DNA from: Haliotis rubra
Lineage: Eukaryota
Direction: 5' to 3'
DNA: 61,103 nucleotides
NCBI RefSeq assembly: GCF_003918875.1
Contig: NW_025767597.1
Location: 372,001-433,103 of the forward strand
Position numbers and translations under genes: made by a program. Of the stretch, positions 1,479-52,351 are shown in pieces. The notes under the pieces are model-generated. The model had not been told where the DNA came from. It saw only the letters and a program-made list of their open reading frames with translations, and made no database searches. Each line of letters starts with the position of its first letter. Position 1 is the first letter of the stretch.

Positions 1479-4400
1479 TTCATAGCAAGTGCAGATTGTA
1501 CAGATTCTTCTGAATCATTCTGTGAACATCCTCACTGGCTACTGCAGGCAACCACATCAGCCTCAGGGAAGACGAGGAACCCGAATGACTTCCCGGGGAA
1601 GGTAACAGTGTTTCCTTCCGTCCTGTAAGGTTTCAGCTCCGGCAGGGTATTATTGACAAGCTTTAGCGGGTTGTTGTTCAAGGCCACGGTTCTGATATGG
1701 TGAAGATGGAACAAGTGCTTTGCATGTTACTTATATTATTTTGTGTACTCCCACATGATATCTGCATGTATATATAATAGTGTTGGTTTGGCCGGCCACT
1801 CACATAACGTGGTTTTCTGTGGTTTTCTAGAAGAAACTTAGTTTAATTTACCACCTGTAACATCAATCGAAACTCTCGATTTGTAAATTCCCTGTTGCTG
1901 AGTCGACCGATTGATGTGAACCAGAAAGCATCTATAGGTTGACAAGTGGAATTATTTGCCAGTGTGTCTATTGAATAGTGTAAACTAGAAAACGTTTAGG
2001 TTGAAGGAGGACTTACTTGCTTGTGAGTTCATCGACTGGCGTCAGCCAGAACACATCTACAGGTTGGTCGGGAAATTGTGGAAACGTAATGGAGGTAGTG
2101 TTATTCGTGGGCAGCAGGAAGTACATCGTCACACTTCCGGGCGCGTAGCCATAGGAACTAAAACACAACACTAAATATTAGAGGACCGTTCCCTTGACAT
2201 GAACATGAATCTGAACCCATTATATTTTACTCCATATTCTGTATTGATTATGTTTGATTTTCAATGGCGCACGGAAGAAGACCTATGTCGACACGTACTT
2301 TATTATTTGATTAAAATGTGAACAAACGGTTGGCAAAAGTGTCTGGGCATCCAATTCTGTTCCCGGGCAGGTCATATCAGAAAACATCAATATATAGTAC
2401 ATGCTATGTACATCAACCTCATCTATTGTACAGACATTCATCTGACGTCCAATCTGGTTATTCTCTAATTCATTCTTTGTACGTACCTAACTGGCTTCAA
2501 ATAAACTTACTTACTCGCAAATCAACTTACTTACTCTCTCTTACACAAGATCCGTACATCAGCCTATCAACCTATATATATACTGTATCTACTGTATATA
2601 CAACTCATCCCCAATCTATTGCAATAGCAGCTCACGTATATATTCCCTCACATTTTTTCTCATGTATCACTTGCTTGACAATGACATTAGAATCTATGTC
2701 GACACGTCGCCTTTCACAGAATAAAGAAGTTGTTTATCCATGGAATTATCATCATTGTTCATGACATATCTCAGTGAGCTAGAAGGTTATCATAGGTCCA
2801 TAATATCCAACGACTATATCAATCCCTGTGAACTTATTCAACATACCAACTGCCAGGACAAGTCCCTTCATACTTTCGTGGTACCTAACCTCACATCGCA
2901 TCCGTTCATTCAACAGATTTTTCTTACTTTGAATTTACGTCTTAGCAGGCTAATGCTTTAAAATATCTGGCTGCATTTTGAAATTACATGGATGGCTTTG
3001 TGCAGTGGGCGTAGGCTCTGATGGTGCTGTTGTCCACGCTTGCCGTTACTGAAAGCACGGAACCTCCGACCAGTCTCTTATACAGGACAGTTAACCAGTA
3101 GTCCTGCAGAGGAACGCATGAACAAAACAAACTCACTAGCTTACATCAATATAAATAGAATATAGGAATGATTGACTTCTCTACAACCATATTTTGTTGA
3201 GTTAAATGTTCAGTGATATTTATTGCTCCAAGAATTTTATCATGTGAAATAATGAATTAGACTAACTATTTGTCATTGTAACATCTATTCAATATCTCAA
3301 TGAACTCAGTGCGGTAAGTTTCCATTCTGTTACGCAACATCATCTGCAGTCGTCTTTGGCAACGAAAACATAAATATGTTTCATCGTTATCGCAGAAACT
3401 GCTTTTCCAAATGAAGTGATTTAATCAAATTCATTGCATGATGGGTAATTTTCTCATTCCTTGATAAAAATGCACAGCATTCATCCAACTTTGGCTTTTT
3501 TCACCGCCTGCTTTAATAACCACAGTCGTGATTAATACAACATCATCCCAACTGACTCGTACATAAAATATCAAACATAATTAGGTTGAGATTAACCATG
3601 CTTGAATTTTCAATGAAACACTTACACCACTAGGTTTAAAGGCAACATTGCGGTACAGTCTATATAATAATAGAGGGTCACTGACACTCGGTGATTTATT
3701 GTTGTAGGTGCTACATGTGTCTATCATTCCCAGTTATTCGTTATCCTAGCAGGAAGATGCCACCATGCCCATCCCTACACGCACCAGCCACATCGCCTGA
3801 GAAAGGTTTGATTTACAGGGCTGGACTTTTTTGTAAACTAAAACACTATCCTTGAAAACATTTGATCCAGCAGCAAGGAACGTTTAAAACCAGAGAAGCG
3901 TGCGCCGTGTACATGCACACTATATACATATATATGAACAAACTTCCAGTTTCATTCATACGGGCAGTGGGTCAATGGTCGTCTCTATACTTACAGGCAA
4001 TGGATCAAAGGTATCAGTGTCAATCAGTGGATAGTTGTCAACGTAGAAATCCTGTCTGAGAACTGCTTTCAAGCCCATCCTGGCAGCAATACCAAGCTTG
4101 TCCAGCCACCTGGACAGTGTACACTTTCAAAAGGTGGTGTAGAAGTTGCAATAGAATGTACGTGTGTTGTGACTTCAGCCCATTTCTACATTTAAGGTCA
4201 CAACATACGTGTCTGTTGTTTTACTAAACGATTTACGAATGAAGGCAAATGTTATCTTGGGCTACTGATTTTGTAAATATCACTTGAAAAAGCATTATCA
4301 TGAACTACCATCAGTCATCATTACGCGAGTATAGTTGACTAAAGTACAATTAGTTGACTAAAGTACAATGTGTATGTGTGAAGTTTTGTGCTGATTTTTT

Positions 4401-4611
4401 TACGCACAGAAACCCAGCGACATATCTATCGGAGATTCCCGGAGCTCCGCCGTGATAACAGGAGGAAGTCTCTCCCAGCCAGACTGGAGTCAGAGGGTTG
4501 GTGCGTCTTGACACATCCAGCGCTGTCTTTATGGCACTGACTAGTGTGTCCATCAACTTGGAATCGGTGAAATTGGGGAGTTGTGCGGTATCGCCGTTGG
4601 TGTAGTAACTG

Positions 4612-5030
4612 TCGATAGATTGGTAGATTGTAATTGTTTAGTCTCCGATAGCAATTAATCGATGGAAGAAACGAAAAACTATCGACGCATCGATAGTATG
4701 TGTGACTTTTGATAGTTTACTAAATGACTTCCGTTGGTACATGCGCAGCGCAAAATACAGGGTGTTTGGGTGCAGACTTAGTAGCTTCAATGAGATTATG
4801 TTTTAACTGTTTACTTGACCTGGGTTTCAAGTTTCTTGTCAGTTATTAAAAGATACTGAAACTACTTCAACTTGTGTTTATTTCATATAAACTATACATT
4901 CATTTGGAAAATGACTTCAAATAGTTTTGCAATAGTTGCTCTATAGACTATCGCTATCGCAATAGTATGTTGCAATAGACTATCGCTTTCGCAATAAATG
5001 TAGTTGTTTCCCCTTCAATAGTCACCCTTA
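4612..5030. mobile_element. Truncated MITE-like insertion with ATCG/CGAT sub-repeats beside the exon 6 acceptor of copy A
   Basis: Absent from copy C intron 5; repeated actatcg/cgatag motifs; ends in agtcaccctta. Confidence 0.45.
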
Positions 5031-6006
5031 GTATTTTTCATATTTCTTGTCAAGTTGGAAGTATAGCTAACAAGTAAAACGTGATAATTTACTCAGTAGC
5101 ATGCCTTTTTTATACCAGCAGCCACGCCTGCTATGATGAACTTCCACGACAGATGATAAAAGACTATACATCAGAAAGTCAGTTCAAGTCATTTTCATGT
5201 AATAAATGTGGACCCTAGTATTATATATGAACTGACTGATCTTTCAGTAAGCCAAGGATGTATTGATGGAACTGTGTCAAAGAATGTTAGAAATAAGATT
5301 AGAAGAGGTATTTGAGCATTGTAGAACATAAATATCAAAATCATTTGCACCTACTGGTGAAAAGTTATTCTGTCAACAGCCCTGTCTCCTCCTGCTGCGA
5401 GGAAACTGAAAAAACAAAACTGAATGATCATGGAAGTCTGCGTGGTTTACTGAAAAATAATATGTGTTCCTGGGTCGATAGCCGAGCATCATCTTCATAA
5501 ATGACAGCAACGCATATCAATGCAACACTTGAGGCCACTGTGGTCAAGATTCCAACAGAGGCAGGATACCCTACGTGAAAATAATATAGCTGATCGCGAT
5601 GTAATAGAACGCGACAAATCATGCTAGATTAGACCCTAGATGGTTGAGAAGATGTATTGTAACTTCCAAACCACTGATTAGATTACATGGTAATACATTC
5701 CTTACAACTAATTACTGTTACAACATGTGAACGTCTACTAAGTCCTAACAGAATGGAATAAAAATTCCCACAACATTGTTTAACAATACATTCCTCCGCA
5801 GTGTAACAACGAAAGGGTCCTGTTATTGAGAAGAAGATACCTTTCATGCCTGGGTATTAGCTTTGCGACCATGTGCACGACATGCGTATTTCTGAATTGT
5901 GTCATCGACTGAGCAGGATACCGAGTGTCATCACTGGTTTTGGTGATTCATAAACGCATGTATATTGTATTGTTTACGGTTGGACATGCTTACACCCACA
6001 TGTGGC

Positions 6007-6268
6007 GCATTTGTTTGATAGTCCAGACTTGGTAGTTTCGCATTTGTTTGATAGTCAAGACTTGGTAGTTTCGCATTTGTTTGATAGTCCAGACTTGGTA
6101 GTTTCGCATTTGTTTGATAGTCAAGACTTGGTAGTTTCGCATTTGTTTGATAGTCAAGACTTGGTAGTTTCGCATTTGTTTGATAGTCCAGACTTGGTAG
6201 TTTCGCATTTGTTTGATAGTCCAGACTTGGTAGTTTCGCATTTGTTTGATAGTCAAGACTTGGTAGTT
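6007..6268. repeat. 33-bp minisatellite, about 8 copies
   Basis: CGCATTTGTTTGATAGTC(C/A)AGACTTGGTAGTTT, directly adjacent units with no spacers. Confidence 0.95.
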
Positions 6269-7056
6269 TATGCCAACTATCACTTTTATGTGAGCTGGGT
6301 CTATGTTTCTGTTGTTGGACTGAAGTCCCAGAATTGTATCAATGCCGAGTCAAGTACAAAGCAAATGGCTGGTCCACTACATCAAAGCTGACGTCCACTG
6401 TGTTGTCAAACAAATCAATTTCCACAACGGTTTTCCTCCTTGTAAGCCCCCGAATCCTTGTATTCCTGCACGGTGGTTGTAATTATAATTAACGAAAGGA
6501 ACGTCTGCGTCATAGACCACTGTCATTACAGTTCTGCCGTGTTGCGCCGGGTTGTATACTTCCTTCTCCAGGCAAATTGTGGGAGTGGCTGGTGCCACCG
6601 ACACTGTATATATCGTCATAGTTCAAGTTTCAGTGGTCACTGTTATTTTGCCCCTTTCCCCTGGGGATTCTGTTTTTGGGGAAAGGCAAGATTACATATT
6701 CATTTGGACTGACGGGAGCCATGTAGTAAACGTGGTGAGCAGTGAGAAAACACTATGTGGAATGCTGGTCTACCTCACTGATGACATCTAGGAAATATGT
6801 TTGGGAAAAACAGTTAGAAATTAAATAAGCATCCCCATGATAACCAGTTGTGCTCTCCTTCTTCCACATTAGTTTCTTTCAATACATACGAATCGGAATT
6901 TCTGCTGGGATGGGTAAAATCCAAACAAAGTGACATGATTTGGTCGTGGGAAAAACATGATTTAGCCAATACCCTCTGAGTTGTTGACATACCTAAATTA
7001 GTAAAAGATGATGAGTTAGCTTCATTTGTTTCATAATTAGGTCTCAGCATACAGAC

Positions 7057-7860
7057 TCAGACAGATTATCAACTCACCTAAAGGTTTTGTGACAAGAGGA
7101 ATGTCTACAGCCTTCCGACAGTCAGATTATCAACTCTCCTAAAGGCTGTGTGACAAGAGGGATGTCTTCAGCCTTCCGACAGTCAGATTATCAACTATCC
7201 TAAAGGTTGTGTGACAAGAGGGATGTCTTCAACCTTCCGACAGTAAGATTATCAACTCTCCTAAAGGTTGTGTGACAAGAGGGATGTCTTCAGCCTTCCG
7301 ACAGTCAGATTATCAACTCTCCTAAAGGTTGTGTGACAAGAGGGATGTCTTCAGCCTTCCGACAGTCAGATTATCAACTCTCCTAAAGGTTGTGTGACAA
7401 GAGGGATGTCTTCAGCCTTCCGACAGTCAGATTATCAACTCTCCTAAAGGTTGTGTGACAAGAGGGATGTCTTCAACCTTCCGACAGTCAGATTATCAAC
7501 TCTCCTAAAGGTTGTGTGACAAGAGGAATATCTTCAGTCTTCCGACAGTCAGATTATCAACTCTCCTAAAGACTGTGTGACAAGAGGGATGTCTTCAGCC
7601 TTCCGACAGTCAGATTATCAACTCTCCTAAAGGTTGTGTGACAAGAGAGATGTCTTCAACCTTCCGACAGTCAGATTATCAACTCTCCTAAAGACTGTGT
7701 GACAAGAGGGATGTCTTCAGCCTTCCGACAGTCAGATTATCAACTCTCCTAAAGGTTGTGTGACAAGAGGGATGTCTTCAGCCTTCCGACAGTCAGATTA
7801 TCAACTCTCCTAAAGACTGTGTGACTAGAGGGATGTCTTCAGTCTTCCGTTGGTCAGATT
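7057..7860. repeat. 61-bp minisatellite, about 13 copies
   Basis: CAGTCAGATTATCAACTCTCCTAAAGGTTGTGTGACAAGAGGGATGTCTTCAGCCTTCCGA. Confidence 0.95.
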
Positions 7861-10228
7861 TCAAGCCCCTCCTTTGGTGTTTATATTTCAGAACGTTTGA
7901 GGCAGAATCGAACATGGCCTGTTTGCCACTAGTGTCAGACGACGTTTGGATGGCAAATGTTCATGGAATATACGGAGTCGCACAATCAACTTTGGTCATG
8001 AGCGAGGTTTTCTGTGAACATGTATTGCGGTCAGTGAACCCCCTACGTATCAGTTATCCTCGTTCGTATATTATTCTCATAAATGATAACAAAGCGTTCC
8101 TCGATCGTGATGTGTTGTGGGGAAGTTTTGAATAGGAGAGGTCCAACGCTATATGTATATTCACATTGCTCACACACAGAACACTCTGTAGAAGCGAGGA
8201 AAATATACAAACTATTTGTTGACTGGGTACAATGTATTTTGTTATGTAAGCATATTTTTCCGGCTACCTGATTGGTCTAGAGGCGGTCACCTGACCGTCG
8301 ACAGAAAAGCATATTGACTCCAACCCAGGTCCGACCAAAAGTCTTATTGACTAGAGTTACTAAAAATATGACGTCATTCTATTGTTTGCATGTCACAGTT
8401 TTGTTGACATCACGTTATTGGTTTGTAAATCGCTGAAATATCTTCGAGCCAATTCACTTGAATGAAATTTTCATAAAATTTCGGTAAGACTTTGGAAGTT
8501 GGTTAGGTTTACTTTTTTCTCACGCAAATTCTACTTTTAGTACAGATCACATCCAATCTGCCTGCCTTGCCGAGTCTAGGCTCATCAGTATAAGACTAGT
8601 CTCCAATTTCAAAGATCTTTCTGTTGGCATGAAAATATTACATTCATTAAAAAACCACGACGCATTACGTACACTATAGTTTTGTCCCGATAAGTCATGT
8701 GTGTATTTATCAGTCAGGTATCCCGACTGCATGGTCGACCGCGAGCAGGATTTTGCCGCTCGCTGGAAACGTCCAATAATTTGTTTGTACGAGCTGGACA
8801 GCCGCTTACCTGTAATTTTGGTTAACAGCTGGAATCTCTACTCACCTGTGTTTTGTGTGTACACGTCAGAAATTCCGTTGAACTTGTTATTGTTGTTTCG
8901 CCTGCCCAATGTTGACAATTCGATTTATGTGTTACCTTGACGTTCCAGTATATCTTACATAATGCCATTACGATAATTTGACTTATGATCCATGCCTGTA
9001 CCAAATATTTGCCAACACGAACGCTCTTGGTCACTTATATTAAGGATGAAGCAAAGAAAGTACAGTATAATTTGGTTGGGCTCATATAAACTGTATGGCC
9101 ACGGCTCTGGCGATGTACTTACTCAGCAAAGAACTGTGTACTTGATCCAGTTACAGAGGCCACGTCAGGTCCAATTACTGGTGTTGTCTCATACCCGGGT
9201 GTCGATCGGAGCAGCTTCTTGAAGTTGTAGAAGTCCATACCTATCTGTCTGCCACTCACAGTGATGTTATATTGCTCAGGAAATATGTCAGGTTCTGTAA
9301 AAAATAACACTTTTCTGAGAACATAAGAGGAATGTTATTTTCAAGTCATTCATAATAGTAGGACCTGTACCCTGATTTTGAAGAGAAGTGGCACAATTCT
9401 CGAATTCAGCCCCCCCCCCCCAAAGTTATCAGATTTGCACAATTTTGCACATTGTAATTTGGTATGTTAAAGTCGAATCATTTAACATGGTAACTTTCAG
9501 TCACATCTTTCCATGCATACGGTTATGTCAATACCATTTCCGAGTTCCAGGCCTGCCAGTTGGTACCCCTTCGCACTGTTGTATTGCAGCAGTTCTTTTG
9601 CTTTGGTAGGATCCCACTTCCCCTCCTTCCTCTTCAGGGCGTTCAGACCAAATATTAACTTCCAGTTGACATCCTGGACAAATGTATTAAGAGCATCCCA
9701 GGAAGCTCCTGCAGACACAACAGACTGTGGGATGACAAATACCTAAAATGTTGGAATATTCGGAGCGTCTGTTATCGTGAGCCCCCAAGAGGACTGCACT
9801 GGCCTCCTGGATATACATATATGTGCAATACCATAGCTCAACAAACTATAAATATAATAAGGAGATATACGCACCTGTAAAAGTATGATTGACATCTGTT
9901 GTGCCATGACCTGTAGGGTCAAAGGTCAGGTTGTCACCCCCAGTTCCTCCAATCCTCAGATAGCATGGAGACAAACCTTTAGCCAGGGCCTGAACTTTCG
10001 GAGACCTGGAGGTAAACAACATTGTGGCACTAGGAGAATCTTGGTACTAAGTTACCACCTGTTTACATAATCGCGTCGCGGCAGGAACAAAGAGTTCAAA
10101 TACATATCACACATCTACAATGTATTAACGGATAAAACACCAAAACAGAAATGGCAAAGGCATTTACATACATTCCGTTTCTGCGCTCAACGGTTTGGAT
10201 ACAATGTTCTTACAGACATCTGCTAAAA

Positions 10229-10390
10229 CATTGGCGGATCCAGAGGGGGGTTCACGGGACCGACCCTCCCCTTTGAAAATGACTTAAGACCACATTGAAG
10301 ATTTGTTTTGCGTTGGTGGAACCCTGAAAACACACACACCCCACACCCCATCCCCCACCCCACCCTTTAAAATTCCTTGATCCGTTCATG
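10229..10390. mobile_element. Small MITE-like element
   Basis: Imperfect inverted ends CATTGGCGGATCCAG / CTTGATCCGTTCATG with G/C-run interior; absent from paralogous intron 1. Confidence 0.5.
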
Positions 10391-11020
10391 TAATATAACC
10401 TAGTTTAGTTTCTTAGTGGTTACCCCTTATCAGGACCTTTGGTCTATATTTTTCACTGATTTGCCCGAATGAAGATTTGAAATATGACGTGCCCAAAAGT
10501 TCAGATACAATAAACTATGTTTTTTTATCAGAGGGACCACAAATTTGAGTTTGATATGTCTGTCGTTCCTTATGTGTCGTTCTAAAATATTCAGCACCTA
10601 GTTGGGACATATAAACAACAACAAACAAGCACTTCGTTGTGTTCGTTATAGTTCTTTATGAACGTAGCGTACTGCATGAGTGTGCCCCGAATACAATTTA
10701 ATAACTTCAAATGGAAGGAATCTTCAATAACATGATAGCTGCTGACCTCTATGCCGATCACCTTGACCTACTTACTTGAAGTCTAATCCTCCCCATTTCG
10801 CTGAGGCAGGCAGGAGATGGGAGTCCAGAGTGACACCAATAAATAATTCATCAATAAATGAAACTACTTGTGTTGTTAAAACTGTGACGCTGACATTGAC
10901 TCCTGCCGTTGCTGTGTGGGATATAAAGGTGGTGACCAGGAGAAGCTGGCAGTGTTCGCTTCATTGTGTCAGGCCTTTCTTATCGGAATGTTTGTCCCAT
11001 GTAATCTGCATTTATATGTA

Positions 11021-12074: not shown

Positions 12075-12417
12075 GCGCCTGTAAATCTACTGTACCTGTA
12101 GGGTCAAAGGTCAGACTATCACCCTCAGTTCCTCCAATCCAAATAGTACGTGACCCAGAGCGCAAATACAGTAAACTATGGGGGAGAGATACTTTAGTTT
12201 GGTATATCTGTAGGTTTGTTAAATGCATGTCGTCCAGTTCTTTCCAGTGATGTGAGGTGGGGGAGTAGACTGGAGTTCATTGTTACGCCAATAAATAAGT
12301 CATCAATAAATGAAACAGCATGAGTTGTTGAAACAGTGACGTTAGCATTGACTACTCCGTTTATGACTGGGATATGGAGTAAGAGACCAAGAGGAGAGCT
12401 GACAGCATTACCTTCAT
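12075..12417 (-). pseudogene. Collapsed heparanase-like fragment: degenerate exon 1 plus 3' half of exon 2
   Basis: MKVMLSALLLVSYSISQS* followed by VVNANVTVSTTHAVSFIDDLFIGVT-like remnants, then [18 protein letters not shown] about 100 bp later; stop, frameshift and most of intron 1 deleted. Confidence 0.85.
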
Positions 12418-17649: not shown

Positions 17650-18038
17650 ACCTAATCGTAGTATATATGTTCTTTTATTTGTGGCTAGATTATCTAAAAT
17701 TGCTAATATCTAAAGGGATGGTGTAAATCCAGCTAGGGGTCCATGCAGGAAGCAATGTACCTTAAGTCCCCATGGTCCCTATTATGGTGATCTACCTTCG
17801 GTTGTTAGTGATCCTATAGCCTGGCTTTATATTGTATTGTTATCTAAAAAATATCGTTTTATGATAACATGCTAGATTTACTTTTAAGATATGTGATACA
17901 CTGGTAGTTTTACTGTTCTTCGTCAACAAGCTTTTAATTTCTACTTTTTATTGTTCTCTAATACGACGAATTAATTGCTCACGTCACGATATGGCTGAAA
18001 TATTGCCAAAGTGACTTTAAATTTTAACTCACTCACTC
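17650..18038 (+). mobile_element. Retroposon 3' fragment, same family as 22437-22917
   Basis: Shared GGGATGGTGTAAATCC...CACGATATGGCTGAAATATTGCC...ACTCACTCACTC. Confidence 0.7.
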
Positions 18039-22264: not shown

Positions 22265-22371
22265 GTGTGTGAGTGTGTGTGAGTGAGTATGTGTGAGAGA
22301 GTGTATGAGTGTTTGTGAGTGTGTGTGAGAGAGAGAGTGTGTGTGTGAGAGAGTGTGTGTGTGTGTGTGTG
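22265..22371. repeat. Compound (GT)n/(GA)n microsatellite
   Basis: Direct reading. Confidence 0.9.
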
Positions 22372-22436
22372 GATACAAATTATCAACTGCAAATGAAATT
22401 AATCTTCAGTAACTTGATGTCTGTTGGCCTCCTTGA

Positions 22437-32721: not shown

Positions 32722-33475
32722 ATGTGTTGTGCCATTATTGATACATGTCGTGCTGTATCATCTGTGATACATATTGTGTAGTTATATTATTGAACATATA
32801 GTGTTGTGCCATCATTGATACATGTCGTTCTGTGTCATCTGTGATACATATTGTGTAGTTATATTATTGAACATATAGTGTTGTGCCATCATTGATACAT
32901 GTCGTGCTGTGTCATCTGTGATACATATTGTGTAGTTATATTATTGAACATATAGTGTTGTGCCATCATTGATACATCATCTGTGATAGTTAGTTATATT
33001 ATTGAACATATAGTGTTGTGCCATCATTGATACATGTCGTTCTGTGTCATCTGTGATACATATTGTGTAGTTATATTATTGAACATATAGTGTTGTGCCA
33101 TCATTGATACATGTCGTGCTGTGTCATCTGTGATACATATTGTGTAGTTATATTATTGAACATATAGTGTTGTGCCATCATTGATACATGTCGTGCTGTG
33201 TCATCTGTGATACATATTGTGTACTTATATTATTGAACATATAGTGTTGTGCCATCATTGATACATGTCGTGCTGTGTCATCTGTGATACATATTGTGTA
33301 GTTATATTATTGAACATATTGTGTTGTGCCATCATTGATACATGTCGTGCTCTGTCTTCTGTGATACATATTGTGTTGCTTCTTAATTGAACATATTGTG
33401 TAGTTTTATTATTGAACATATAGTATTGTGCCATCATTGATACATGTCGTGTTGTCTTGTCTATGATACATATTG
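32722..33475. repeat. 77-bp minisatellite, about 9-10 copies
   Basis: ATCATTGATACATGTCGTGCTGTGTCATCTGTGATACATATTGTGTAGTTATATTATTGAACATATAGTGTTGTGCC. Confidence 0.93.
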
Positions 33476-37400: not shown

Positions 37401-40400
37401 ATATCTGTTTTATTTATGAAGTCAGTCAGGACTATACTTTTGATCGTGAGTCACTCATAACTAACATATTAAAAACGTTCATACTGGAGAATATCTAGGC
37501 TTGATTTTCAAACAGATGTCATTTTGCCTAAAGGCCATAGAGCGATGGATCTTTATCAGGGTAATTTGTTTAGATGACCGAATTATGTTTTGTCTTGTCC
37601 TAATAATAAAAGATCGCAAAATTTATTATGAATTATATTTTCGTGTTTCTGGTCATATTCTACAAAGTAAATAGGAGTTATGAAATCTCCCATTTGCCCC
37701 AGTGAAATTCAATAAACGTAGGAGAATGACAAATATCAGAAAAGCATTAGTTTCCGGTGACTTTTTCTCGTCCCACACTGACCAAGCAAGAGATTAGTGC
37801 TCGATGTGACCCGGCTAGGCTACTTTATCAAGTAACAATTAAATTGGTACAATGCACATTCACAGTAAATTGGAAAATGTAAGAGCATTCACAAGCCTAA
37901 AAGCACATGGCAGGATATGAACACACATACACCTATGGAAATTAAATGAAATGTCAAAGAACCTATTTTGGTAGTAAGTTTAGTAGTAAGTTCTAATATG
38001 CTTGCTTACTCAACTCCATTGTATACAAATCATTGTTACAGAGTTGAGTCATCTAGAAAACTTTCTTTCAGTGCTTAATACATTTCACACAGTTCCACAG
38101 AAAACATATTCAGTGAAGTGGCAACGGAAGAGAGGCAAGGATAATGAGCTGTGAGCAACTTAGCAAATACACTCAGCAACATACTGTAGCCAGAGCTTTT
38201 GTTTATCAAGGGGTTAAAAGCACAGGTGGATGTTATATCTGTGATCTTGGTGCGCTTGACGCTTCCATAACAAATTTCTGTATAACTGAAGCTCAAAATC
38301 AGTAAAATTAGAGAATTGTGCAGTGTGAAAATCAGTAATACAACTGTCCAAAAGATGTCGTGTGACTATTGAATCAAGAAAGAAAGAAAGAAAGGGATCG
38401 TCTCTATACTCACAGGCAATGGATCAAAGGTGCCATGGTCAATCAGTCCATAGTTTCCGGCGTAGAAATCCTGTCTGAGGACTCCTTTCAATCCCATCCG
38501 GGCAGCAATACCAAGTTTGTCCAGCCACCTGAACAGTTTACACTTTCAAAAGATGGTGTAGATGTTCCTTTTGTTGTATTACTAGTACGTTACATAAGTG
38601 CTCACAATTAAGGTCAAATCTTATCTTGGAGTTTTACTTCATAAACATCATTTTAGAAAGAATTATTATGAACAGGCATTGTTCATTATTATGCGAATCC
38701 AATTGACTAATGTACAAAGTGTACGTGGTATATTTTGTGCTGCTGTCTTACGCACAGAAACCCAGCGACGTATCTGTCGGAGATTCCAGTAGCACCGCTA
38801 TCATAACAGGAGGACGTCTCTCCCAGCCACACTGGGGTAAGTGGGTTGGTGCGTCGTGTCACATCCAACGCTGTCTGTATAGTAAAGATCAGGTGGTCCA
38901 TCAACTTGGAATCGGTGAAATTAGAGATTTGTGCAGTATGGCCGTTGGTGTAGTATCTGTACGAAAGGGGAACAGGCCTGATAGTAATGTTTCATCCACC
39001 TTATCTGGTTGGAAATATCACACATGAAACATGTAACATATTGAATAAGTACAAGCAAAAATAATTATTCTATTACATGCTTCATGTTATTCCATCATTT
39101 AACAAATCTGATGATGAACTTTTAAGATAGATAAAATAGGATTATCTCTGGAAACGATTTCATGTGTAAATGAGCAGGTGGATTCGCATAGATAAAAGAA
39201 AGCATTGGTGATGTTTCAGGAGCAACATTCCAAGGTGCAGAGGAACACTTTTATGGATAGACAACTTCGTTATTGCAACAGATGCGACGTTTCTGTGTAG
39301 ATTTATTGCAATAAAGAAGTTCTATCCATAAAAAGTGTTCCTCCTCATCACACCAGCATCTAAATGCCACTTAAAGGAAAAGAAAATTCCAAGGTGTATA
39401 AACAAATTTATCAAAACATTTTAATGCCTACAAATATAATTGGAATGAAATATTTGAACAGGTCAAGTAGACTTGTCATAAAAGTCCACAGCAAACAGTT
39501 GAGCAGTTTAGAACATTTCCTAGATACCAAAATCAACCTACTGGTGGAAGGTTATCCTGTCTACGGCTTTGTCCCCGCCTCCTGTGAAGAAACTGGAAAC
39601 AAGGTGGGGTTAAATTGTGAGTTTGAGGTCTTATGATGTCTCATGTGTTCATGACTATTGTCACTATGATAACCGCTAACATTAAATCAAACTCCACATT
39701 CGAAACACCAATCATCAACTGACGAATCCGTAGGGAACTGTTTACAAATGTATATTGAGGTTAATTCTTGCGTCAACGATTTTAAACGGTATAATGCGAT
39801 ATTGCTGAGGTATGTCCACTTCTCGTTAGTAAGTTCATTGACACAACTGTCGGATAAATACACTCACTCAGCAAAAAAACTGGGTTCTTGATCCCGTTAC
39901 AGACCCCATATCAGGTCCTATTACTGGTGTTTTCTCATACCCTGGCGACGTTTGGAGCAGCTTCTTGAAGTTGTAGAAGTCCATACCCAACTGACTGCCA
40001 CTCACAGTCATGTTATGTTTCTCAGGGAATATGTCAGGTTCTGTAACAATTAACACTTTCCGGATTGCTTTGTGCTAGAAATTGCATGACATGATATTCT
40101 CAAGTCATACGTTATTGTTGGAATTGACAATTGGAACATTTTTCTTTATTGAAGGAAAATGAGTATGAAATAAGGGACAAAAGTGAATTTCTCATTTTTT
40201 TTTTAAATGTTCAAATGCAAGGTCAGGGCACATTTTGTTTAATCCAGTTATTATGTGTCTATTGAATTGTATTGAACAAAATAGGCAGTAGCGTTCAATG
40301 GCTTGTATCCCTGAATATGGCTAGATGAATAAATGTTAGTTTTTAAAAATATTGAAAAAGAACATGATCAGATTTGCAAAGTTTTGGCACATTTCATGCA

Positions 40401-42726
40401 ATTCGTTATTTTGTATTTGAGTCAATCTAACGAAATAAAATGGTTAAGTTATGTATTCAGCACTATGGTTATATTAATACCATTTCCGAGTTCCAGGCCT
40501 GCCAGTTGGTACCCCTTCGCACTGTTGTATTGCAGCAGTTCTTTGGCGTTGGTAGGATCCCAGTGACCACCCTTCCTCTTCAGTACGTTCAGACCAAACA
40601 TTAACTTCCAGTTGACATTACGGACAAATGTAATAACAGCATCCCAGGTAGCTCCTGCAGACACAACAGGCGTAACGATAATGAGGTCCCATTTGCTTAT
40701 GATGCTCCAGTATTCGAAGCACATTTTATCCTGACCCCCCAAACCCAACAGTACTGGCCTTCGAGGTATACACGCGTGCAATACCTTGGCTCCACAAATT
40801 ATATATATACTATTCACACTTTGCTAAGGATCAAATAATTGATTCAACAGAAAACTATGATGTGGGGTTTAAGTTGGTTTAAATATCTAAGCTTCTTGTA
40901 AGCATGAATCCTAGGTTTCAGTATGTCATTGCATCTTGTGGAACCCATTCCCGCTATCGCCAGGTGTTGTTTAGTTGTCAGTGACTCGTTCCATGATGTT
41001 CAAAATGGTTCATTGGTGCTATGAAAACCATTTTTATGGTTACTCATGTATCAAGTGCATAAGGTTAGATTAAAGTGGCTGTTTGCCTAAAGATGTGTTT
41101 CCATATTATTATTTATCCAGTTTCAATTTACAAATCTATGTTTAAGTAAAGTTGGGATTTTTTTTATCCTTAGCAAAGTGTGAGTAGTATATCAATAATA
41201 GATTTAAGCACCTGTAATTGCACGGTTTATGTCAGGTAGCCCCTGCAGACACAACAGGTTTAACGATAGTGAGATCACCAATTAGTTAAGATGTTCGAAT
41301 ATTTGGAGCATCTGATATCCTCTTACCTCAGGGATAATAAAAGTCCGGAATTCTCAGATGGATGTCTATACATGCAAAATACCATAGCATGACAAAATGT
41401 ACAACAGAGAAAAATAGATACACACACCTGTAAATGTATTATTGACATCTGTTGTGCCATGACCTGTAGGGTCAAAGGTCAAACCATCACCTGCAGTTCC
41501 GCCAATCCTCAGGTAGCATGGAGCCAAACCTTTAGCCAGGGCCTGAACTTTCTGAGAGCTGAGGGTAGCACATGGTAACATGATTACATAATATGTACAT
41601 AAATAAGTAAATGAGCACGTTCACCCATCTCCAAGTCGAGGCAGAAACAATGACAAAGTGTTATTTAGTCCAATTTGTCTGAAGGTAGTTGGCTTGACTG
41701 AAGTCATTCTATTTCCTTTTATGAAATACACAATGCCATTTTAGAAAGTGGTCAAATGTAACTTTATGTTATATTTGGGATTACACTTTCTTAGTAAAGT
41801 ACAGATTCTAGTACTTTTTTGGGGTTGAGTCCCATCCGGGATTCGAACCCACACCCTCAGAATCAGGCACCTCATCGCCAGCACGCCTAGTCAGACGCCT
41901 AGACCGCTCAGCCACCGCAGCTTCCACCGGACTAGAATCTGTACTTTACTAAGAAAGTGTAATCCCAAATATAACATAAAGTTATATTTCCTTTTACATT
42001 TACATTTATATAGCGCTAACATCCAGTAGACTGCTCAAGAGCGCTGCTGAACTCCGTATGCAATGCTAAACAAATGAGTTTTTAATCTGGATTTGAAAGT
42101 ACTGAATGTCTCTACTGATCGAAGCGAGGGGTAATTTGTTCCACAAAGCTGGGCCGACAACCTGAAAAGACCTTTCACCAAATGTCTTGGTCCGGCTGAC
42201 TACAGTCTGGCACATGTGTTGTTGTGATCACCTCAGATGGCGTGTTGGTTTATATTCTTGCACAAGGTCTTTTAACAGTGTGCATGAATAAGACAATTAA
42301 TATAATGGGTCCTGAAAGTGATACTAGAATACAACAGTATCATTTTATTGATTTCAATTACTTTGAAGATGATTTACGTGATTAAGATCCAATTTCTGTT
42401 TTTCTCTCGATTATTTGCATCGATAAGATTTGCATAGTATAAGTGTGTCCAAAATACAAATTATAAACAGATGAAAGGAATCTTCAATAATGTGATAGCT
42501 GTCGACCTCTGTGTCGATCACCTTGACCTACTTACTTGAAGTCTAATCCTCCCCAGTGCTGCGGGGCGGGCAGGAGATGGGAGTCCAGAGTGACACCAAT
42601 GAATAATTCATCAATAAATGAAACTGCTTGTGTTGTTAAAACTGTGACACTAACATTGACTGCTCCCGTTGACGTGTGGGATATGAAGGTGGTGACCAAG
42701 AGGAGAGCTGACAGCGTTACCTTCAT
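34411..42726 (-). CDS. HPSE: Heparanase-like GH79 copy D, 10 exons, one +1 frameshift in an A7 run of exon 4 (probable assembly error, otherwise pseudogene)
   Basis: Exons 42726-42536, 41558-41428, 40654-40481, 40040-39868, 39592-39542, 38956-38756, 38528-38414, 35321-35206, 34982-34842, 34570-34411 sum to 1453 nt (1452+1). Plus strand gcaaaaaaac at 39871-39880 versus gcaaagaac in copy A. Motifs ELGN|[20 protein letters not shown]. Confidence 0.8.
35791..37330. repeat. 15-bp minisatellite, about 100 copies, with a higher-order duplication of about 550 bp
   Basis: GRCCAGGTTATATAA units; the variant order in 35879-36418 repeats in 36419-36973. Confidence 0.97.
39240..39343. repeat. Imperfect palindrome (hairpin) in intron 5 of copy D
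   Basis: GAGGAACACTTTTATGGATAGA..CTTC.TTATTGCAA / TTGCAATAA.GAAG..CTATCCATAAAAAGTGTTCCTC. Confidence 0.8.
40810..41187. mobile_element. Tc1/mariner-type MITE in intron 2 of copy D
   Basis: TIRs CTATTCACACTTTGCTAAGGAT / ATCCTTAGCAAAGTGTGAGTAG, TA on both sides. Confidence 0.75.
41722..41984 (-). mobile_element. tRNA(Leu)-like Pol III retroposon enclosed in 59-bp inverted repeats
   Basis: Minus strand GGTGGCTGAGCGGTCTAGGCG (A box) and GGGTTCGAATCCC (B box). Inverted arms 41754-41812 and 41931-41989. 12-bp direct repeat TATTTCCTTTTA at 41710 and 41985. Confidence 0.7.
41992..42290 (-). mobile_element. L2-type LINE 3' end fragment
   Basis: [32 protein letters not shown] peptide and (AATGTA)n tail. 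Confidence 0.7.
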
Positions 42727-44503: not shown

Positions 44504-47500
44504 ATGGTACATACGTTTAGTCCGATTTGGCTCCTAGTGTTACTATGGATACCAGCGTTCACCACGTCACAGCAGCATCAGGTTCATGTGATGATATCTA
44601 CTGACAAAGTTGTGCATCAAGTTGACGAGATGTTTGTTGGAGTGACCATCGACAGTCATATTCTATGGTTAGGGTTTGACCGACATCATTTGTTTCAGTT
44701 AACGTACCTAAATCAGTCTGCTCGGCTGTTGTAAGGGTATTTACATCGTACAGTCATGGCGTCGTAGTGACCTGGGTCATAGGATTGAATCTACTGTGAA
44801 TACATATATCATGTGTGAGTGAGCGAGCTGGTTATACACTGCTTTAAACACTATTCCAGTAAAATCACAGTATAATGTTAGTGGTAAACCCGACATGATG
44901 CAGGCCTAAACCACTGATGCTGACAACATGTATATAATGAAGATAAACTGTGATCGGATCCCAACGTCACAGGATTGTAGAACACCTAAGGGAGGTAACT
45001 GTGTACAGGAAATCGGTGCACCTTGTGTGACTAGGTGAACAGTGTCTCTGAATATACATACATTTACTCAAAAAAAGAAGAAACTTGACATACTGTTTTG
45101 GAGTTTATTTACTGAGTGCATATATCTGATTCAACATTACATCTTGGTTCAATTACAGAAAGGGGTGGTGGGGTAGCCTAGTGGTTAAAGCGTTGGCTCG
45201 TCACGCCGAAGACCCGGGTACGAATCCCCACATGGGCACAATGTGTGAAGCCCATTTCTGGTGTCCCCCGCCGTGATGTTGCTGGAGTATTGCTAAAAGC
45301 GGCGTAAAACCAAACTCAGTCAGTCAATTACAGAAAATCATCACTTTACAAATTTCGAAAACATGATTATCCAGAAAGTGTTTGATTATGAGAAGCCTTT
45401 TACAAACTTCATAGTTGAGTATGTCGTAATACTACTAAGGGTCGCTAATCCAAATTATAGCGGAAAGACGCTTGTACCACTTGGCGACCCAACCAACATC
45501 TAACATAACATTAGGTGTATGTATATTTTACTGTAGCCATGGGCTGTTGGCAAATATATTTGATAATAATTGCATCCCAATTATTAAACAGTTCACCAAA
45601 TCTACAGAAACTCGTGAAAGAACTTGTTCCCTCTTATCTGAGGGTCGGGGGCACCGAGGCTGATCACGTGGTATTTGATCCCCATGCAACACACCACAGT
45701 TCCAACACAACATTACCATTAAACTACTGGGTAAGTATACTGTACCTGTGAAAGACTACTCGCCCTTAACTGTTCTTGAAGAAATCGTTAAGATTTGTAT
45801 CGTTAACTGTATTTCTATGATTGTTATTATTATAGAAATCGCACATAAGATTTGTATGCTCAAGATAATGGTTTCCCTCGATCACTGGATGTCAATCTCA
45901 ACGTCACATCGTATTGTCAATATGAACTCCGATGGGAAGTATACAACTCCCTATTACACGTGTCTTAACTAGGGGGTGAATTTCTGTTTATCCTTTGTTT
46001 GTCATTAAGGCTTTTAGGACATGAGACATGTTGGCCTAAGTCCTTCAATGGCTTGGATTAATGATAAAACTCGAAGGTACATAACGGCGCCCCTATCTGC
46101 ATAGCGTTCGTAGCATTTAGTCATTTATAAAGCCTTTCATAAACTGTACAGTTGAGATAGGTCGTAATACTCCTAACGCTTTGTGGAAAGGGTCGCAAAT
46201 CCAAATTGTAGCGCCAAGACAGGTCTCCAATGCACTTCATATATTATAACGCTGAGGTGGCAACAGTGTGGTTGGTTAGATACCCTGATGTTAGCGTTTG
46301 ATACTTACATACTTAATGACTGATAATTGTTACAACGCTTGAATACAATAAAGTAGCGTGAACTCAATAACTGATACCCCATGAATCAATACCTGTCTAA
46401 GATAGTTAAAGGTAGCCATGAAGATCCGTGATAAAATTGATCTTCAGTAACCCATGCTTATCGTAAGATCGTTGATCGGATGGTCAGGCTTGCTGACTTG
46501 GTTGACACATGTCATCGTGTCCCAATTCCGTAGATTGATGCTGATGCTGTTGATCACTGTTGATCACCGGATTGTGTGGTCCAGACTCGATTATTTACAG
46601 ACCGCTGCCATATACCTGAGACAAGCAGAAATAACAACAACAACCTGGGCCTAGATTTTCGAAGCTCTCTTAGCGCTAAGACAGTCGTAAGTGCCATACA
46701 TTAACATTAACTTACGACAATCTTAGCGCTAAGAGAGCTTCGAAAATCTAGGCCCTGCCAAGGATAGTTGTGGTCCAGTAGTCTGCCTCATTGCCAAAAC
46801 ATAGATTGATATCACTGTGTGCCATTGTGTATCATGCTCTGGTTACGTTCGGGGCTTGTAATGTTCCATTAATGGAATTTCTAAGCTTTGGATAGTTTCA
46901 ATGCATATTTGTGTCTTTGCATTACTTTATGCGTTACACTTTTCAGACGTTTGTAATTTCTCTTTGCAGCTGAAGACTTGGATATACTTAACAAGTTCGT
47001 TCACAGCACAGGGGTGAAACTTATATTCGACCTTAACATTTTGCTGCGGAAACAGGGAAAGTGGGACCCATCGAATGCCGAATTGTTGCTTAAATACTCA
47101 TCACAGAAAGGCTACCATATTGCAGGCTTTGAACTCGGAAATGGTAGGTTATGTCTTTCAAATGCTTAACAAAAGTAACAGCGTGTTTGCCACATCAGGC
47201 ACTTTTACCAGAAGGGATACTGGGGTATCACAGTGGTTAAAGCTTCGACAGGCCGAACACCCATGCATAGTCACTACGTGTTCAACGTGTGAAGGTCAGT
47301 TCTGTTGTATAATGCCTTGATAGTGTTGGAATATTGCGGGAAAATCGTAAAAACAACCTCACTCAGTCTTTGATACACTTTTAATTTTATTTTTTTTCAA
47401 GAACCAAATGCGTTTCATCGCAACGCTAACATCACATTATCGGACGCCCAACTTGTTGGTGACTTTGCACGGCTGAAACGGGTCTTTCAAGGTACATCCT

Positions 47501-48801
47501 ATAAGTCCAGCTTAATCATTGGACCAGATGTGGCTGGACTTCGTGTGGCTCTGGTTGCAGGGTACGTGCCTTTCATTTCCACATACCTGACTGAAGATCT
47601 TTCTGATCCGTGAAAATGCGGGTTAGAATTGGTCTTCAGCATCCTATACTTGCCGTAAGCGGCGACTAACAGAATCGGGTGATCAGACTCAACTTGGTTG
47701 ACACATATCATCGTATCCCAATTGGGTGGATCAGTGTTCATAATGTTGATCCCAGGATTTTCTGGTCCAGACTCCATTATTTACATACTGCCGCCACATA
47801 GGTGGAATATTGCTGAGTGCAGCATTAAGCAACAAACAAATTAACAAACGAACACTTTTCTGTCCATACAAATAATAATTCCTTGTCATGGATATAATTC
47901 GTAGGCTAGGTGCGACATTCTAGGTGTAATCGTCGTCACTTTAAGACCCGGATTCGATTTCCCTCGTGTAGAACGTGGGAAGCCTAAATTCGGGTGTCCC
48001 ACGCCGTGACGGTGCTGCAATATGAAAAGCGGCGTAAAACCACACACACATTTCTTGTATCTACGACCTTTACATTCTCCCGCACAATCCATTACCACCA
48101 TATCAAATAAACCTCGATGACATTTATACATGTATTTCATTTTTGTAAAAATTAAAGAATAGATGAGTTTCATGCATACTGGGATTAGACAAACAGTACC
48201 CTTTGAGTGATCTGTCATCAACTATACACATGAAGCTATGGCGTACCTGGGACGTGGTAACATTCGTCTACCGAATTACAACATTCAAGGCCTCAGTAAA
48301 GCTTTCAAGAAGTTGTATGGTAGACATGTGGAGGACATTTCCAAATCTGATGCATCACTGACAAAAATGATGTCCGATGTAATTCTCTATTATGATTATA
48401 ACAAACGTTCCCGAATTATTTCCGGTGAACAATTGACTAGACTTAGCATATGTTTATGACGGGTGCCGCCGGTGGGGCAGGATACGCCCACCTTAACACA
48501 AACACCCGGTATCATCACTATTTCATAGTGATTCATAAACACATGCTCTGTCACCGTATCGCATGGGGACAATCACTGGACTATGTGGTTCAGACCCGAT
48601 TTGTTTACAAACAACATCATACAGCTGTAATACTGCTGAAACAAATATCTGCTTATGATACAGTCACAACTGTACAATCGACTCTGATTTGGACAGAGAT
48701 TTCTTATGAATAAAAGGGTTTTGTCGCTTCTATCTACTTGTATATTGCAGATTTTTGTCCCATGGTGGAGCAAGTGTCGTAGACGTCGTGAGTTTCCATC
48801 A
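44504..48801 (+). CDS. HPSE: Divergent heparanase-like GH79 paralog E, 5' half (five exons visible), truncated by assembly gap
   Basis: Exons 44504-44703 (or 44730), 45592-45730, 46970-47143, 47402-47561, 48751-48801. Signal peptide, VDEMFVGVTIDSH, PSYLRVGGTEAD, KLIFDLN, FELGN|EPN, IIGPDV, VDVVSFH|gtaagt. The exon 2/3 phase junction is unresolved. Confidence 0.85.
45161..45323 (+). mobile_element. tRNA-derived SINE
   Basis: Near-identical to 33628-33799; TSD tcaattacagaaa. Confidence 0.9.
46415..46643 (+). mobile_element. SINE-like dispersed repeat, same family as 28824-29019
   Basis: GAAGATCCG..TCTTCAGTAACCCATGCTT..GGTCAGGCTTGCTGACTTGGTTGACACATGTC..GGTCCAGACTCG with (AAC)n tail. Confidence 0.75.
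46648..46754. mobile_element. Palindromic Harbinger-group MITE
   Basis: GGCCTAGATTTTCGAAGCTCTCTTAGCGCTAAGA ... TCTTAGCGCTAAGAGAGCTTCGAAAATCTAGGCC with CTG TSD. Confidence 0.8.
47214..47367 (+). mobile_element. Degenerate copy of the tRNA-derived SINE (others near 47905-48045 and 59082-59137)
   Basis: GGGGTATCACAGTGGTTAAAGC...GGAATATTGC...CTCACTCA similarity to the intact copies. Confidence 0.6.
47605..47850 (+). mobile_element. SINE-like dispersed repeat, same family as 28824-29019
   Basis: CCGTGAAAATGCGGGTTAGAATTGGTCTTCAG...GGAATATTGCTGAGTGC with A-rich tail. Confidence 0.75.
48225..48530 (+). mobile_element. Penelope-like retroelement 3' remnant
   Basis: LSKAFKKLYGRHVEDISK..SLTKMMSD resembles a mollusc PLE C-terminal motif, followed by GACGGGTGCC..GGGCAGGA; recognition from memory. 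Confidence 0.55.
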
Positions 48802-48965: not shown

Positions 48966-49103
48966 NNNNNNNNNNNNNNNNNNNNNNNNNNNNNNNNNNN
49001 NNNNNNNNNNNNNNNNNNNNNNNNNNNNNNNNNNNNNNNNNNNNNNNNNNNNNNNNNNNNNNNNNNNNNNNNNNNNNNNNNNNNNNNNNNNNNNNNNNNN
49101 NNN
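48966..49103. other. Assembly gap (run of N)
   Basis: 138 N characters. Confidence 1.
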
Positions 49104-49662: not shown

Positions 49663-50672
49663 AGGCAATGGATCAAAGGTACTATTGTCAATCAGTCCAT
49701 AGGTTGCTGCATAGAAATCCTGTCTGAGAACTGCTTTCAACCCCATCCTGGCAGCAATACCAAGCTTGTCCAGCCACCTGGACAGTTTACACTTTCAAAA
49801 GGTGGTGTAGAAGTTGTATTTGTACCTGTATGTTATTTCACTTAATTGACGCTATCTTAGGCTATCTAAATAGATATCACTTATAAAGAATTATCATGGA
49901 CTACCATCTGTCATCATTATGCGAGTATATTGTATGTTGTATATTTTGTGTTGATGTTTTACTCACAGAAACCCAGCGACATATCTATCGGAGATTCCCG
50001 GAGCCCCGCCATGATAAAAGGAGGATGTCTCTCCCAGCCAGACTGGAGTAAGTGGGTTGGTGCGTTGTGTCACACCATCGCTGTCTGTATCGGCTGATGA
50101 ATAGAGACTATATTTCAGAAGGTCATTTTCAAGTCATGTTCATGTACTAAATGTGGACTCTGGTATTATACATGAACTGATTGATCTTTCAGTATGCCAA
50201 GGACGTATTGATGGAACTCTATCGAAGAGTGTAAGAAATCAGATTAGAATATTTAACCACACATGAACAAGTATTTGAGCAGTGTAGAACAATTAATGAA
50301 TATCAAAATCAATTGCACCTACTGGTGAAACGTTATTCTGTCCACGGCCCTGGATAGTTATTCTATACTAGCTGCCACGCCTGCCATGATGTGATTCAAC
50401 AATTGATTATAACAGGCTATATTTCAGACGGTCATTTTCATGTAACAAATGTGGACTCTAGTAATTAGACATTAATTAGTTGATCTTTCAGTAAGTCAAG
50501 GACACATTATATGAAACTGTATGAAAGTATGAAAGAAATAAGATTGGAATATTTAACCAAACAGAAAACGTATTTAAGTAATAGCAAACAATTCATGAAT
50601 ATCAAATATAACTGCACGTACTGGTGAAAGGTTATTCTGTCCACGGCCTTGTCTCCTCCTCCTGTGAAGAAA
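49663..50672 (-). pseudogene. HPSE: Heparanase-like copy F fragment (exon 5 twice, truncated exon 6, exon 7)
   Basis: Exon 7 49777-49663 ([38 protein letters not shown]). Exon 6 is only about 50090-49967 ([26 protein letters not shown]; 5' part and acceptor deleted). Exon 5 at 50672-50622 with a partial copy at 50351-50323. Its intron 4 (50673-52200) closely matches that of copy B. Confidence 0.85.
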
Positions 50673-52351
50673 CTGAGGAAATAAAGAAGAAGGACCTGGG
50701 AAGTCTGCGTGATTAACTGTAAAATATTAGGTGTTCATGTGTCGATTATCGAGCATTATGGTAATAAATGATAGGCATGTATTGTAGTGCCACAGTTGTG
50801 GCAATGTAAACTGTGGTCAAGATTCCATCACATGCCAAGGCTGGATATGGAGGATGGACATAAAAAACACCGAAACAGACACTCTTGATACAATAGAAAG
50901 TGTCGTATCTCTCTGGATTAGACCGTAGATGTTTGAGAAGATTTTAGATTACAACTGATTCCAAAAGCATTAATACATAGTAACCTCCACACCACTGATT
51001 ACATTAGATGGTAAAATACATTTCCCATTAGTAATTCGTGTTCCAACACATGAACGTCTACTGAAACCTTACAGAAGCAATTTCAAATTCCTACAACATC
51101 GTTTAATAGATTACACAGCTGCATTACAACAACAGAAACTTGTAAATACTTACATTTTCAAGCAATTTGTGTGAATAGTTTTCGAGAACACTTGATGTCA
51201 TCACTAAATTTCAGTGGTTCATTCATAAAGTTGTCACTGTTATTTCGCACTTTTACCTGAGGGATTATGTTTCTAAGGATAGCCAAGATGGGATATTCCT
51301 TTGCACTTACGTTTTCTATGCACTGAGAAAATGCTGGCCTACCGCACTGATAACATCTATGAAATACTTTTGGAAAAATAGTTAGACAATAAATATGCAT
51401 CCCCATGATAAAGTGTGCTCCCCTTCTTCCACATTAGTTTCTTTCAATACATGTGAATCGGAATTTCTGCTAGGGTTGGTAAAATCAAAACAAGGTAATA
51501 TGATTTGGCCAAAAAAAGTGACCAAATACGTTTGAGTGGTTGACATGCCGGAAATAGTCATACAAGAGAGGGGTAAGAACGCCTCATTTGTTTCATACTT
51601 AGGTCTTTGCATACACATTCAGAGTATAATCAACTCTCCTAAAGGCTGTGTGACAAGTGGGATGTCTTCAACTTTCCGACACTCAAATTTCCAGCAGCTC
51701 CAGACATTGTTTTTTGTTTACATTTGGGAACTTTTGAGGCAGAATCGAGCATGCTGTTTTGCCATGATTTCAAAGAGTGTCACAGGACGTTTGGATGACA
51801 AAACAACTATCATGACATGGATGGAATCTTGCAATCAACTTTCCTCACGAGAGAGGTATCCTGTGAATGTAGAAAGGGTTTAATTGTTTCTATTTGTAGG
51901 GTTTATTTCAGATTATTACGGTCAATGAAGCTTTGTGTTATTCTCGTTAGCGTTGGTATATCATTTTCACAAATAATGTCAAAAGCGTTCATCATGATGT
52001 CTTATAGGAAGTGAGACCTGTTTTGAATGGGAGAGATTCAATGCTACATACATATTCATATGGCTCACCCACGGATTCTGGGTACATTCTGTAGATGCAA
52101 GGACAATTATACAAATGATAAGCTGACTGGTTACAATGTATTATATAGATGTTGTGGTTCACTCTTATCGTTATAAGGTGGTTCAGCTCCATATAACCTG
52201 TATGTCATATAGAGGGTTTCAGAGTTATCCCGTGATTCCGTGCGCGCCGCCATGTTGGTTGTCATTCGCGTCCCCAGCAACCATAGCGTCACTAGCAACT
52301 ATCGTCTACGCATACGTCTGTCTGCTTCAGTCCGTCATCTAACCATCTGTC

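Follow-up and report, generated by a model that had tools for sequence, protein, structure and literature searches.

At the distal end of contig C2707 of the blacklip abalone, Haliotis rubra, lies a series of heparanase-like genes of the GH79 family. The window analysed here, meaning the whole stretch of 61,103 nucleotides (nt) from C2707:372001-433103, runs to the end of the 433,103-nt contig and contains six GH79 units (named A to F) together with a relic and a spare first exon. It is the distal end (last 52 kb) of a tandem GH79 array that comprises at least about 24 heparanase-like genes and spans approximately the last 330 kb of the contig. A preliminary description of this DNA had proposed a tandem array shaped by birth and death in a gastropod that probably feeds on algae. 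The host does graze algae, and the window contains one copy that is intact, others that are nearly so, a dead one and a relic, i.e. head-to-tail, non-allelic paralogs accompanied by pseudogenes and gene remnants. Positions given below refer to the window unless preceded by a contig name.

All units follow a common plan of 10 exons with AG/GT borders and consistent phases, the product of which is about 480 residues long. The gene plan was mapped with full-length abalone GH79 proteins as guides, retrieved by one 57-residue exon query, and the exon inventory of each copy was obtained by tblastn with the exon peptides of copy C. Exons 1 to 10 measure 179-191, 131, 174, 166-173, 51, 201, 115, 116, 141 and 160 nt, the last including the stop codon. 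The sizes 131/174/51/201/115/116/141/160 reported earlier were all recovered in A, C and D with AG and GT borders and in the right phases; that list had missed exon 1 as well as exon 4, which lies between the 174-nt and 51-nt exons. An in-frame exon 4 of 160 nt (A, 9135-9294; D, 39881-40040) was considered and rejected because a strong GTGAGT/GTAAGT donor is conserved in all copies and the weak donor of the 160-nt form is not, having no counterpart in C. Joined exon models were used for translation, alignment, trees and the ratio of nonsynonymous to synonymous substitution rates (dN/dS) only, and breaks in A and D were read as X.

Copy C (24507-30517, minus strand) is the only unit in the window that is open as assembled. 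Its exons 1 to 10 lie at 30339-30517, 29598-29728, 29254-29427, 28653-28818 (166 nt), 28076-28126, 27515-27715, 26996-27110, 25938-26053, 24987-25127 and 24507-24666. Its own exon 1 is truncated at the 5' end, where the original start is gone and a new in-frame ATG is used. A duplicate exon 1, named C' (32088-32275, minus strand), sits 1.7 kb upstream of it, is intact and in phase with a canonical start and signal peptide, and gives C two alternative first exons. C' joined to C exons 2-10 yields an open protein of 480 residues, 477 of which are identical to XP_046553594.1; the copy C protein carries nine N-x-S/T sequons.

Copy D (34411-42726, minus strand) has all 10 exons, at 42536-42726, 41428-41558, 40481-40654, 39868-40040 and 39542-39592 (exons 1 to 5) and at 38756-38956, 38414-38528, 35206-35321, 34842-34982 and 34411-34570 (exons 6 to 10). 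Its sole defect is an extra T in a T-run at approximately position 39873, which lengthens exon 4 at its end from 172 to 173 nt. The extra T is absent from read contigs of two public runs (X2 and X3) of one sample, and since the contigs covering this position lack it, the frameshift is either an assembly error or confined to one allele. Like C, D is probably an open gene. Copy A (1532-10964, minus strand) also has 10 exons, at 10776-10964, 9875-10005, 9535-9708, 9123-9294 and 5355-5405 (exons 1 to 5) and at 4408-4608, 3995-4109, 2988-3103, 2017-2157 and 1532-1691 (exons 6 to 10). Exons 2-10 of A are open and in phase; in exon 1, a 2-nt deletion after the ATG, within the signal peptide, puts the start codon out of frame with the rest. 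Upstream of A lies the relic (12085-12417, minus strand), which is made up of a fragment of exon 2 and an exon 1 that carries in-frame stops and a frameshift.

Copy B (16491-23139, minus strand) is plainly a pseudogene: exons 1-5 have open frames (22952-23139, 21526-21656, 21229-21402, 20811-20979 and 19200-19250), exons 6 and 7 are deleted, exon 8 is partial (17348-17422), and exons 9 and 10 are frameshifted (16973-17088 and 16491-16646).

The divergent paralog E (44504-48799, plus strand) is represented by exons 1-5 only (44504 to about 44690, 45590-45720, about 46970 to 47143, 47401-47563 and 48752-48799), after which comes an assembly gap, a run of N at 48966-49103. On the other side of the gap lies copy F (49663-52204, minus strand), of which exons 5-7 are present in part: exon 7 at 49663-49776, the 3' half of exon 6 at 49969-50076, exon 5 at 50622-50672, and a partial exon 5 duplicate at 50325-50351. 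Homology of its intron 4 to that of B (89%) extends to 52204. In tblastn with the copy C exon peptides, exons 1-4 of F were missing from the assembled side, which makes F a fragment whatever the gap contains; its exons 8-10 would fall within the gap or past it. The gap sits in intron or intergenic DNA between these convergent partial genes, and no exon or reading frame crosses it. Its right flank is F intron 7, where homology to intron 7 of A and C ends about 45 nt before the gap, whereas the same intron of A and C has a further 316-444 nt before exon 8. On the left, the gap is flanked by E intron 5 and dispersed repeats, with no homology to intron 7 of A or C. Because the intron-7 homology stops short on the right and is missing on the left, the two sides are not continuous and belong to two convergent genes.

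The introns of the array and the spaces between its exons contain several repeats. In D intron 7 (35789-37330), a 30-nt minisatellite of 51 copies maintains long open frames on both strands, e.g. an open reading frame (ORF) of 453 residues, with no Pfam match—a trap for false ORFs. Further minisatellites are found at 6006-6269, 7058-7864, 23809-24128, 31269-31920 and 32717-33455, with periods of 33, 61, 44, 14 and 77 nt, in introns and between the two first exons of C; the 14-nt array lies directly upstream of C's own exon 1, the one whose original start is lost. Two segments in D introns 1-2 (40764-41225 and 41688-42149) had word depths thousands-fold above their neighbours in three out of three runs, with many conflicting joints, and are very high-copy dispersed repeats. 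Beyond F and near the contig end, the array is bounded by transposon-type ORFs (54302-57133), namely one with a YqaJ exonuclease and a PHD finger (54302-55294, plus strand) and a Harbinger-type DDE_Tnp_4 transposase (56480-57133, minus strand).

The genes of the array are already in RefSeq as "heparanase-like" or "hyaluronoglucuronidase-like", and their sequences are thus not new. Comparison with the RefSeq proteins (numbered here with the prefix P) revealed that a single H. rubra gene with isoforms X1-X9 mixes paralogs from window positions 1532-42726 and from C2707:216.9-225.2 kb. Isoform X6 (P0285) equals D exons 1-2 joined to C exons 3-10 (481/481 residues), and isoform X7 (P0282) equals D exons 1-2, C exons 3-9 and A exon 10 (481/481 residues). 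P0284 corresponds to C' followed by C exons 2-10, with a different acceptor at the last exon (477/480 residues). In isoform X8, C' is followed by exons from another gene, some 150 kb distant (C2707:216.9-225.2 kb). The exact agreement of P0282 and P0285 with our gene models, and the near agreement of P0284, supports the exon borders, and these three proteins, equal or nearly equal to combinations of window exons, were used for full-length searches. Such chimeric isoforms reflect either real splicing between copies or paralogs stitched together by the annotation pipeline. The annotation of this locus is misleading, and copy counts and expression estimates taken from it will be wrong.

Comparison of the window with itself revealed a repeated minus-strand unit at approximately 65-90% DNA identity, introns included, which agrees with the earlier remark that introns can be aligned among the minus-strand copies. 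The copies are not haplotigs of one another, the outcome that had been named as fatal to an array: their DNA differs by 10-35%, and the paralogs are genuine. Across the assembly, a six-frame search found 38 exon-3 matches to the Pfam profile PF03662, 20 of them on C2707 at 116-419 kb. Copy C exon 6 as query gave 37 genome matches (21 on C2707), none of which contains a stop. About 14 further GH79 exon series were located by tblastn in C2707 at 100-300 kb; C2707:300-372 kb and contigs C960, C71, C2283, C1089 and C1724 were covered through exon matches and 3-kb loci. In the upstream part of the array, the four best exon segments of P0165 (XP_046553587.1, "heparanase-like" in RefSeq) map at 98-100% within C2707:121107-128392. 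Relics made of an exon 1 with stops and an exon 2 occur directly upstream of full genes at C2707:188.5-188.8 kb and 226.3-226.7 kb (loci L039 and L043). The recurrence of this gene-plus-relic module at 188.5 kb, at 226.4 kb and beside A suggests duplication of multi-gene blocks.

Two loci on contig C960 (L009 and L030) are 96.9% and 98.4% identical over 3 kb to loci on C2707 (L010 and L018), and the remaining C960 loci have 92-95% identity to C2707 in a different order. C960 represents a haplotype of different structure or else a block duplicated recently; because some of its loci may be allelic to C2707 loci, the true locus count is put at somewhat below 37. The copies on C71 reach only 74-84% as their best identity to any other fetched locus. 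The catalytic domain of GH2, the other glucuronidase family, was found at only about five loci in the same assembly. The seven other molluscs surveyed so far have one to four GH79 genes each (PMC7560691), and the 37-38 exon matches in H. rubra bear out the proposed expansion of the family.

Phylogenetic analysis of 84 GH79 proteins placed all array-type abalone proteins in a Haliotis-only clade with a Shimodaira-Hasegawa-like approximate likelihood-ratio (SH-aLRT) value of 95, so the expansion is lineage-specific, as had been suspected. H. rubra P0208, H. rufescens P0201 and Gigantopelta form a separate clade (SH-aLRT 98) whose members are probably the canonical heparanase orthologs; the array genes are not orthologous to vertebrate heparanase or to that of other molluscs. 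P0208, encoded on another contig (1,382,158 nt), is a GH79 protein of 532 residues with a short linker and a KK motif, and carries a 29-residue insertion that is absent from its H. rufescens counterpart and may be a retained intron. A-D belong to one abalone subfamily and E to another, beside its H. rufescens ortholog P0194. On this tree the paralogs are interspersed with genes of other species: the partner of A is H. asinina P0182, and those of C are H. asinina P0184 and P0189. The group A-D was defined with the tree already in view; the approximately unbiased (AU) test rejected it as a single clade (p 0.002). Intact orthologous genes occur in H. asinina, H. cracherodii and H. rufescens.

The expansion had also been described as recent, and this part was not supported. 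Given the different H. asinina partners of A and C and the rejection of an A-D clade, the duplications that gave rise to A, C and D predate the split of H. rubra and H. asinina, and synonymous divergence (dS) among the three is 0.19-0.25. With dN/dS values among them of 0.33-0.59, the coding sequence of the array is under relaxed purifying selection, and copies including A and D were constrained for most of their history.

These values bear on the possibility that the array is mostly decaying DNA or an artefact of assembly, with one or two functional genes. C is the one open copy in the assembled window, B and F are dead like the relic, C960 and C2707 loci can be 97-98% identical, the RefSeq models are chimeric across copies, and a gap separates E from F, all of which such an account would explain. 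It is nevertheless improbable in our view: window copies at 65-90% identity are not alleles, all 37 exon-6 matches are free of stops, dN/dS is below 1, the defect of D is missing from read contigs, and intact orthologs are found in three other Haliotis species.

A second multi-copy GH79 clade, separate from that of Haliotis, is formed by the patellogastropods Patella and Lottia. It includes P0205-P0233 of Patella caerulea and P0237-P0251 of P. vulgata, and at least 13 of the P. caerulea proteins have neighbouring locus tags on one 65.6-Mb record. Like the abalone proteins, these are heparanase-like, approximately 480 residues long and found in grazers of algae; unlike them, some members retain a short linker, and they are likewise uncharacterised. 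From the tree topology, the limpet expansion is independent of the abalone one.

Assignment of the array proteins to GH79 is straightforward. P0284 scored 79.5 bits against PF03662 (cut-off 23.1), and the six-frame search placed exon 3 of all five copies A-E above the cut-off. Human heparanase HPSE (5E8M, 5LA4) is the best solved match, nearly full length, with P0284 (residues 101-482) aligning to proheparanase 5LA4 at E 9e-80 and 272 bits. At this level of sequence similarity, the array proteins would be expected to share the family fold, a (beta/alpha)8 barrel with a C-terminal beta-sandwich. Microbial exo-beta-glucuronidases such as AcGlcA79A from Acidobacterium (3VNY) and the Burkholderia GH79 enzyme (5BWI) share the family and the single chain and are only distantly matched (E 2e-12 to 2e-4 for bacterial GH79 structures). 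The acid/base motif ELGNE (LELGNE in the array) aligns exactly with ELGNE of heparanase, and in each of A-D the exon 3/4 junction splits the GAA codon of its Glu as G|AA. The nucleophile motif WLGETSS aligns in C, and A, C, D and F all carry WLGETS in exon 6, at the positions given above; B lost the nucleophile Glu with its exon 6. The array proteins otherwise retain both catalytic Glu residues. The positions of Asp, Thr, His/Tyr and Tyr that we take to form the glucuronate (-1) site of heparanase are kept in the array proteins. A short hydrophobic N-terminal segment of signal-peptide type makes the secretion proposed earlier plausible.

The architecture departs from that of heparanase at several points. 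In vertebrates, a linker is excised from proheparanase to give a heterodimer of 8 + 50 kDa. Residues 82-126 of 5LA4 have no counterpart in P0284: two alignment blocks abut in the abalone protein and are 45 residues apart in the human chain, which indicates that the activation linker is absent. A, C and D all lack this segment of about 45 residues, so that no 8 + 50 kDa processing is expected. In an alignment of 21 GH79 proteins, no connection at this position is shorter than that of the array proteins, and the canonical mollusc proteins have an intermediate one with a KK motif. The basic clusters of human heparanase are also not conserved; the positions of KKFKN and QPRRKTAKMLK, presumably the heparan-sulfate-binding clusters HBD1 and HBD2, are occupied by SNRVY and NVGRSSAFVAD in C, with A and D just as non-basic there. 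Residues after the nucleophile differ between paralogs (SSCYHGG in A, SSSSPGG in C, SSCYDSG in D and SSFYHGG in F, compared with SSAYGGG in human), at the turn that, on our understanding of heparanase, binds the glucuronate carboxylate (human YGG). The most variable segments are the junction left by the former linker, the part following the acid/base residue, the HBD2-equivalent loop and the residues after the nucleophile, followed by a G-x-N-Y loop, the region of signal-peptide cleavage and two C-terminal segments. Several of these coincide with cleft loops of heparanase, and their variation fits a diversification of the substrate cleft.

Some RefSeq names suggest endo-beta-glucuronidases of hyaluronidase type, strictly comparable to the leech enzyme LHyal (7EYO). 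P0284 matches this enzyme over residues 118-483 (E 1e-62), and LHyal is also a lophotrochozoan single-chain GH79 protein without a long linker; ahead of the aligned core it has just some 17 additional residues. Five GH79 hyaluronidase paralogs are present in leeches (PMC13368403), as against approximately 37 copies in abalone. The match to the leech enzyme is weaker than that to heparanase (216 versus 272 bits), the RefSeq name is an automatic transfer, and the hyaluronan substrate and spreading role in blood feeding have no obvious fit to abalone. Hyaluronan is not known to be a dietary or body component of abalone, and we regard this identity as very unlikely.

That the locus is a real GH79 array shaped by birth and death, in an expansion specific to abalone, is well supported. 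On balance, we consider it reasonably probable, from the architecture and the tree, that the products of this old array are secreted single-chain glucuronidases that most likely act on glucuronic-acid glycans other than heparan sulfate. The proteins would be retaining beta-glucuronidases, endo or exo; having no equivalent of the stretch cut out of vertebrate proheparanase, they would not depend on proteolytic activation. A substrate other than heparan sulfate is suggested by the loss of both basic clusters, by the presence of a canonical ortholog elsewhere in the genome and by variable segments at the cleft loops, and specificity may differ between paralogs. For the same reasons of lost linker and clusters and a separate ortholog, together with the sheer number of copies, turnover of heparan sulfate is unlikely to be the main role.

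Digestion of algal polysaccharides is our leading guess for that role, made attractive by the independent expansion of GH79 in limpets, a second grazing lineage. In its specific form, namely that the linker-less clades of abalone and, independently, limpets constitute a digestive battery of glucuronidases for ulvan, glucuronans and fucoglucuronomannans, the proposal is tentative. Beta-glucuronidase preparations from abalone and from Patella vulgata are sold commercially, and the expanded GH79 genes might underlie them; in the papers searched, no statement of the sequence family of these preparations was found.

The paralogs could instead remodel endogenous glycosaminoglycans or mucus, in matrix, mucus, haemocytes or the reproductive tract, with no part in digestion. 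The closest solved relatives, heparanase and the leech hyaluronoglucuronidase, both act on animal glycosaminoglycans, and in bivalves GH79 is reported to be expressed in haemolymph, gill, eye and labial palp and not in the hepatopancreas (PMC7560691). Those expression data concern one to four canonical genes, however, and abalone already has a canonical ortholog for such a role, which retains the basic residues and some of the linker; the array genes have no basic clusters, and about 37 copies are hard to explain by housekeeping turnover. Endogenous remodelling is, to us, a doubtful account of the array, and action on glucuronic-acid glycans other than heparan sulfate is still the reading we prefer.

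Several points weigh against that preference. Part of the 37-38 matches may come from allelic contigs, as the 97-98% identity between C960 and C2707 loci indicates, and the H. asinina RefSeq models in the tree could themselves be chimeras. The frameshift of copy A is as given by the assembly. The read contigs covering D differ from the window by about 2% and may represent the other allele and not a correction. The roles given here to heparanase residues and clusters come from structural work on the human enzyme, and surface loops vary in most protein families, which makes the loop pattern weak evidence. The three sequencing runs that hold this stretch, all from one sample, include none recorded as RNA; a word search returned no transcript-derived protein of the array subfamily; and enzymology is on record for no array member.

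No paper on abalone GH79 or heparanase genes was found in the literature searched, in which the size and age of the expansion, the architecture without linker or basic clusters, the parallel in limpets and the chimeric annotation have not previously been described. If the genes are active, abalone would possess approximately ten times as many GH79 genes as any mollusc surveyed in print, with limpets as a parallel case. Activity would also suggest a so far unrecognised class of animal glucuronidases whose specificity has diversified, of relevance to algal digestion, aquaculture feed and enzymes used as glycan tools.

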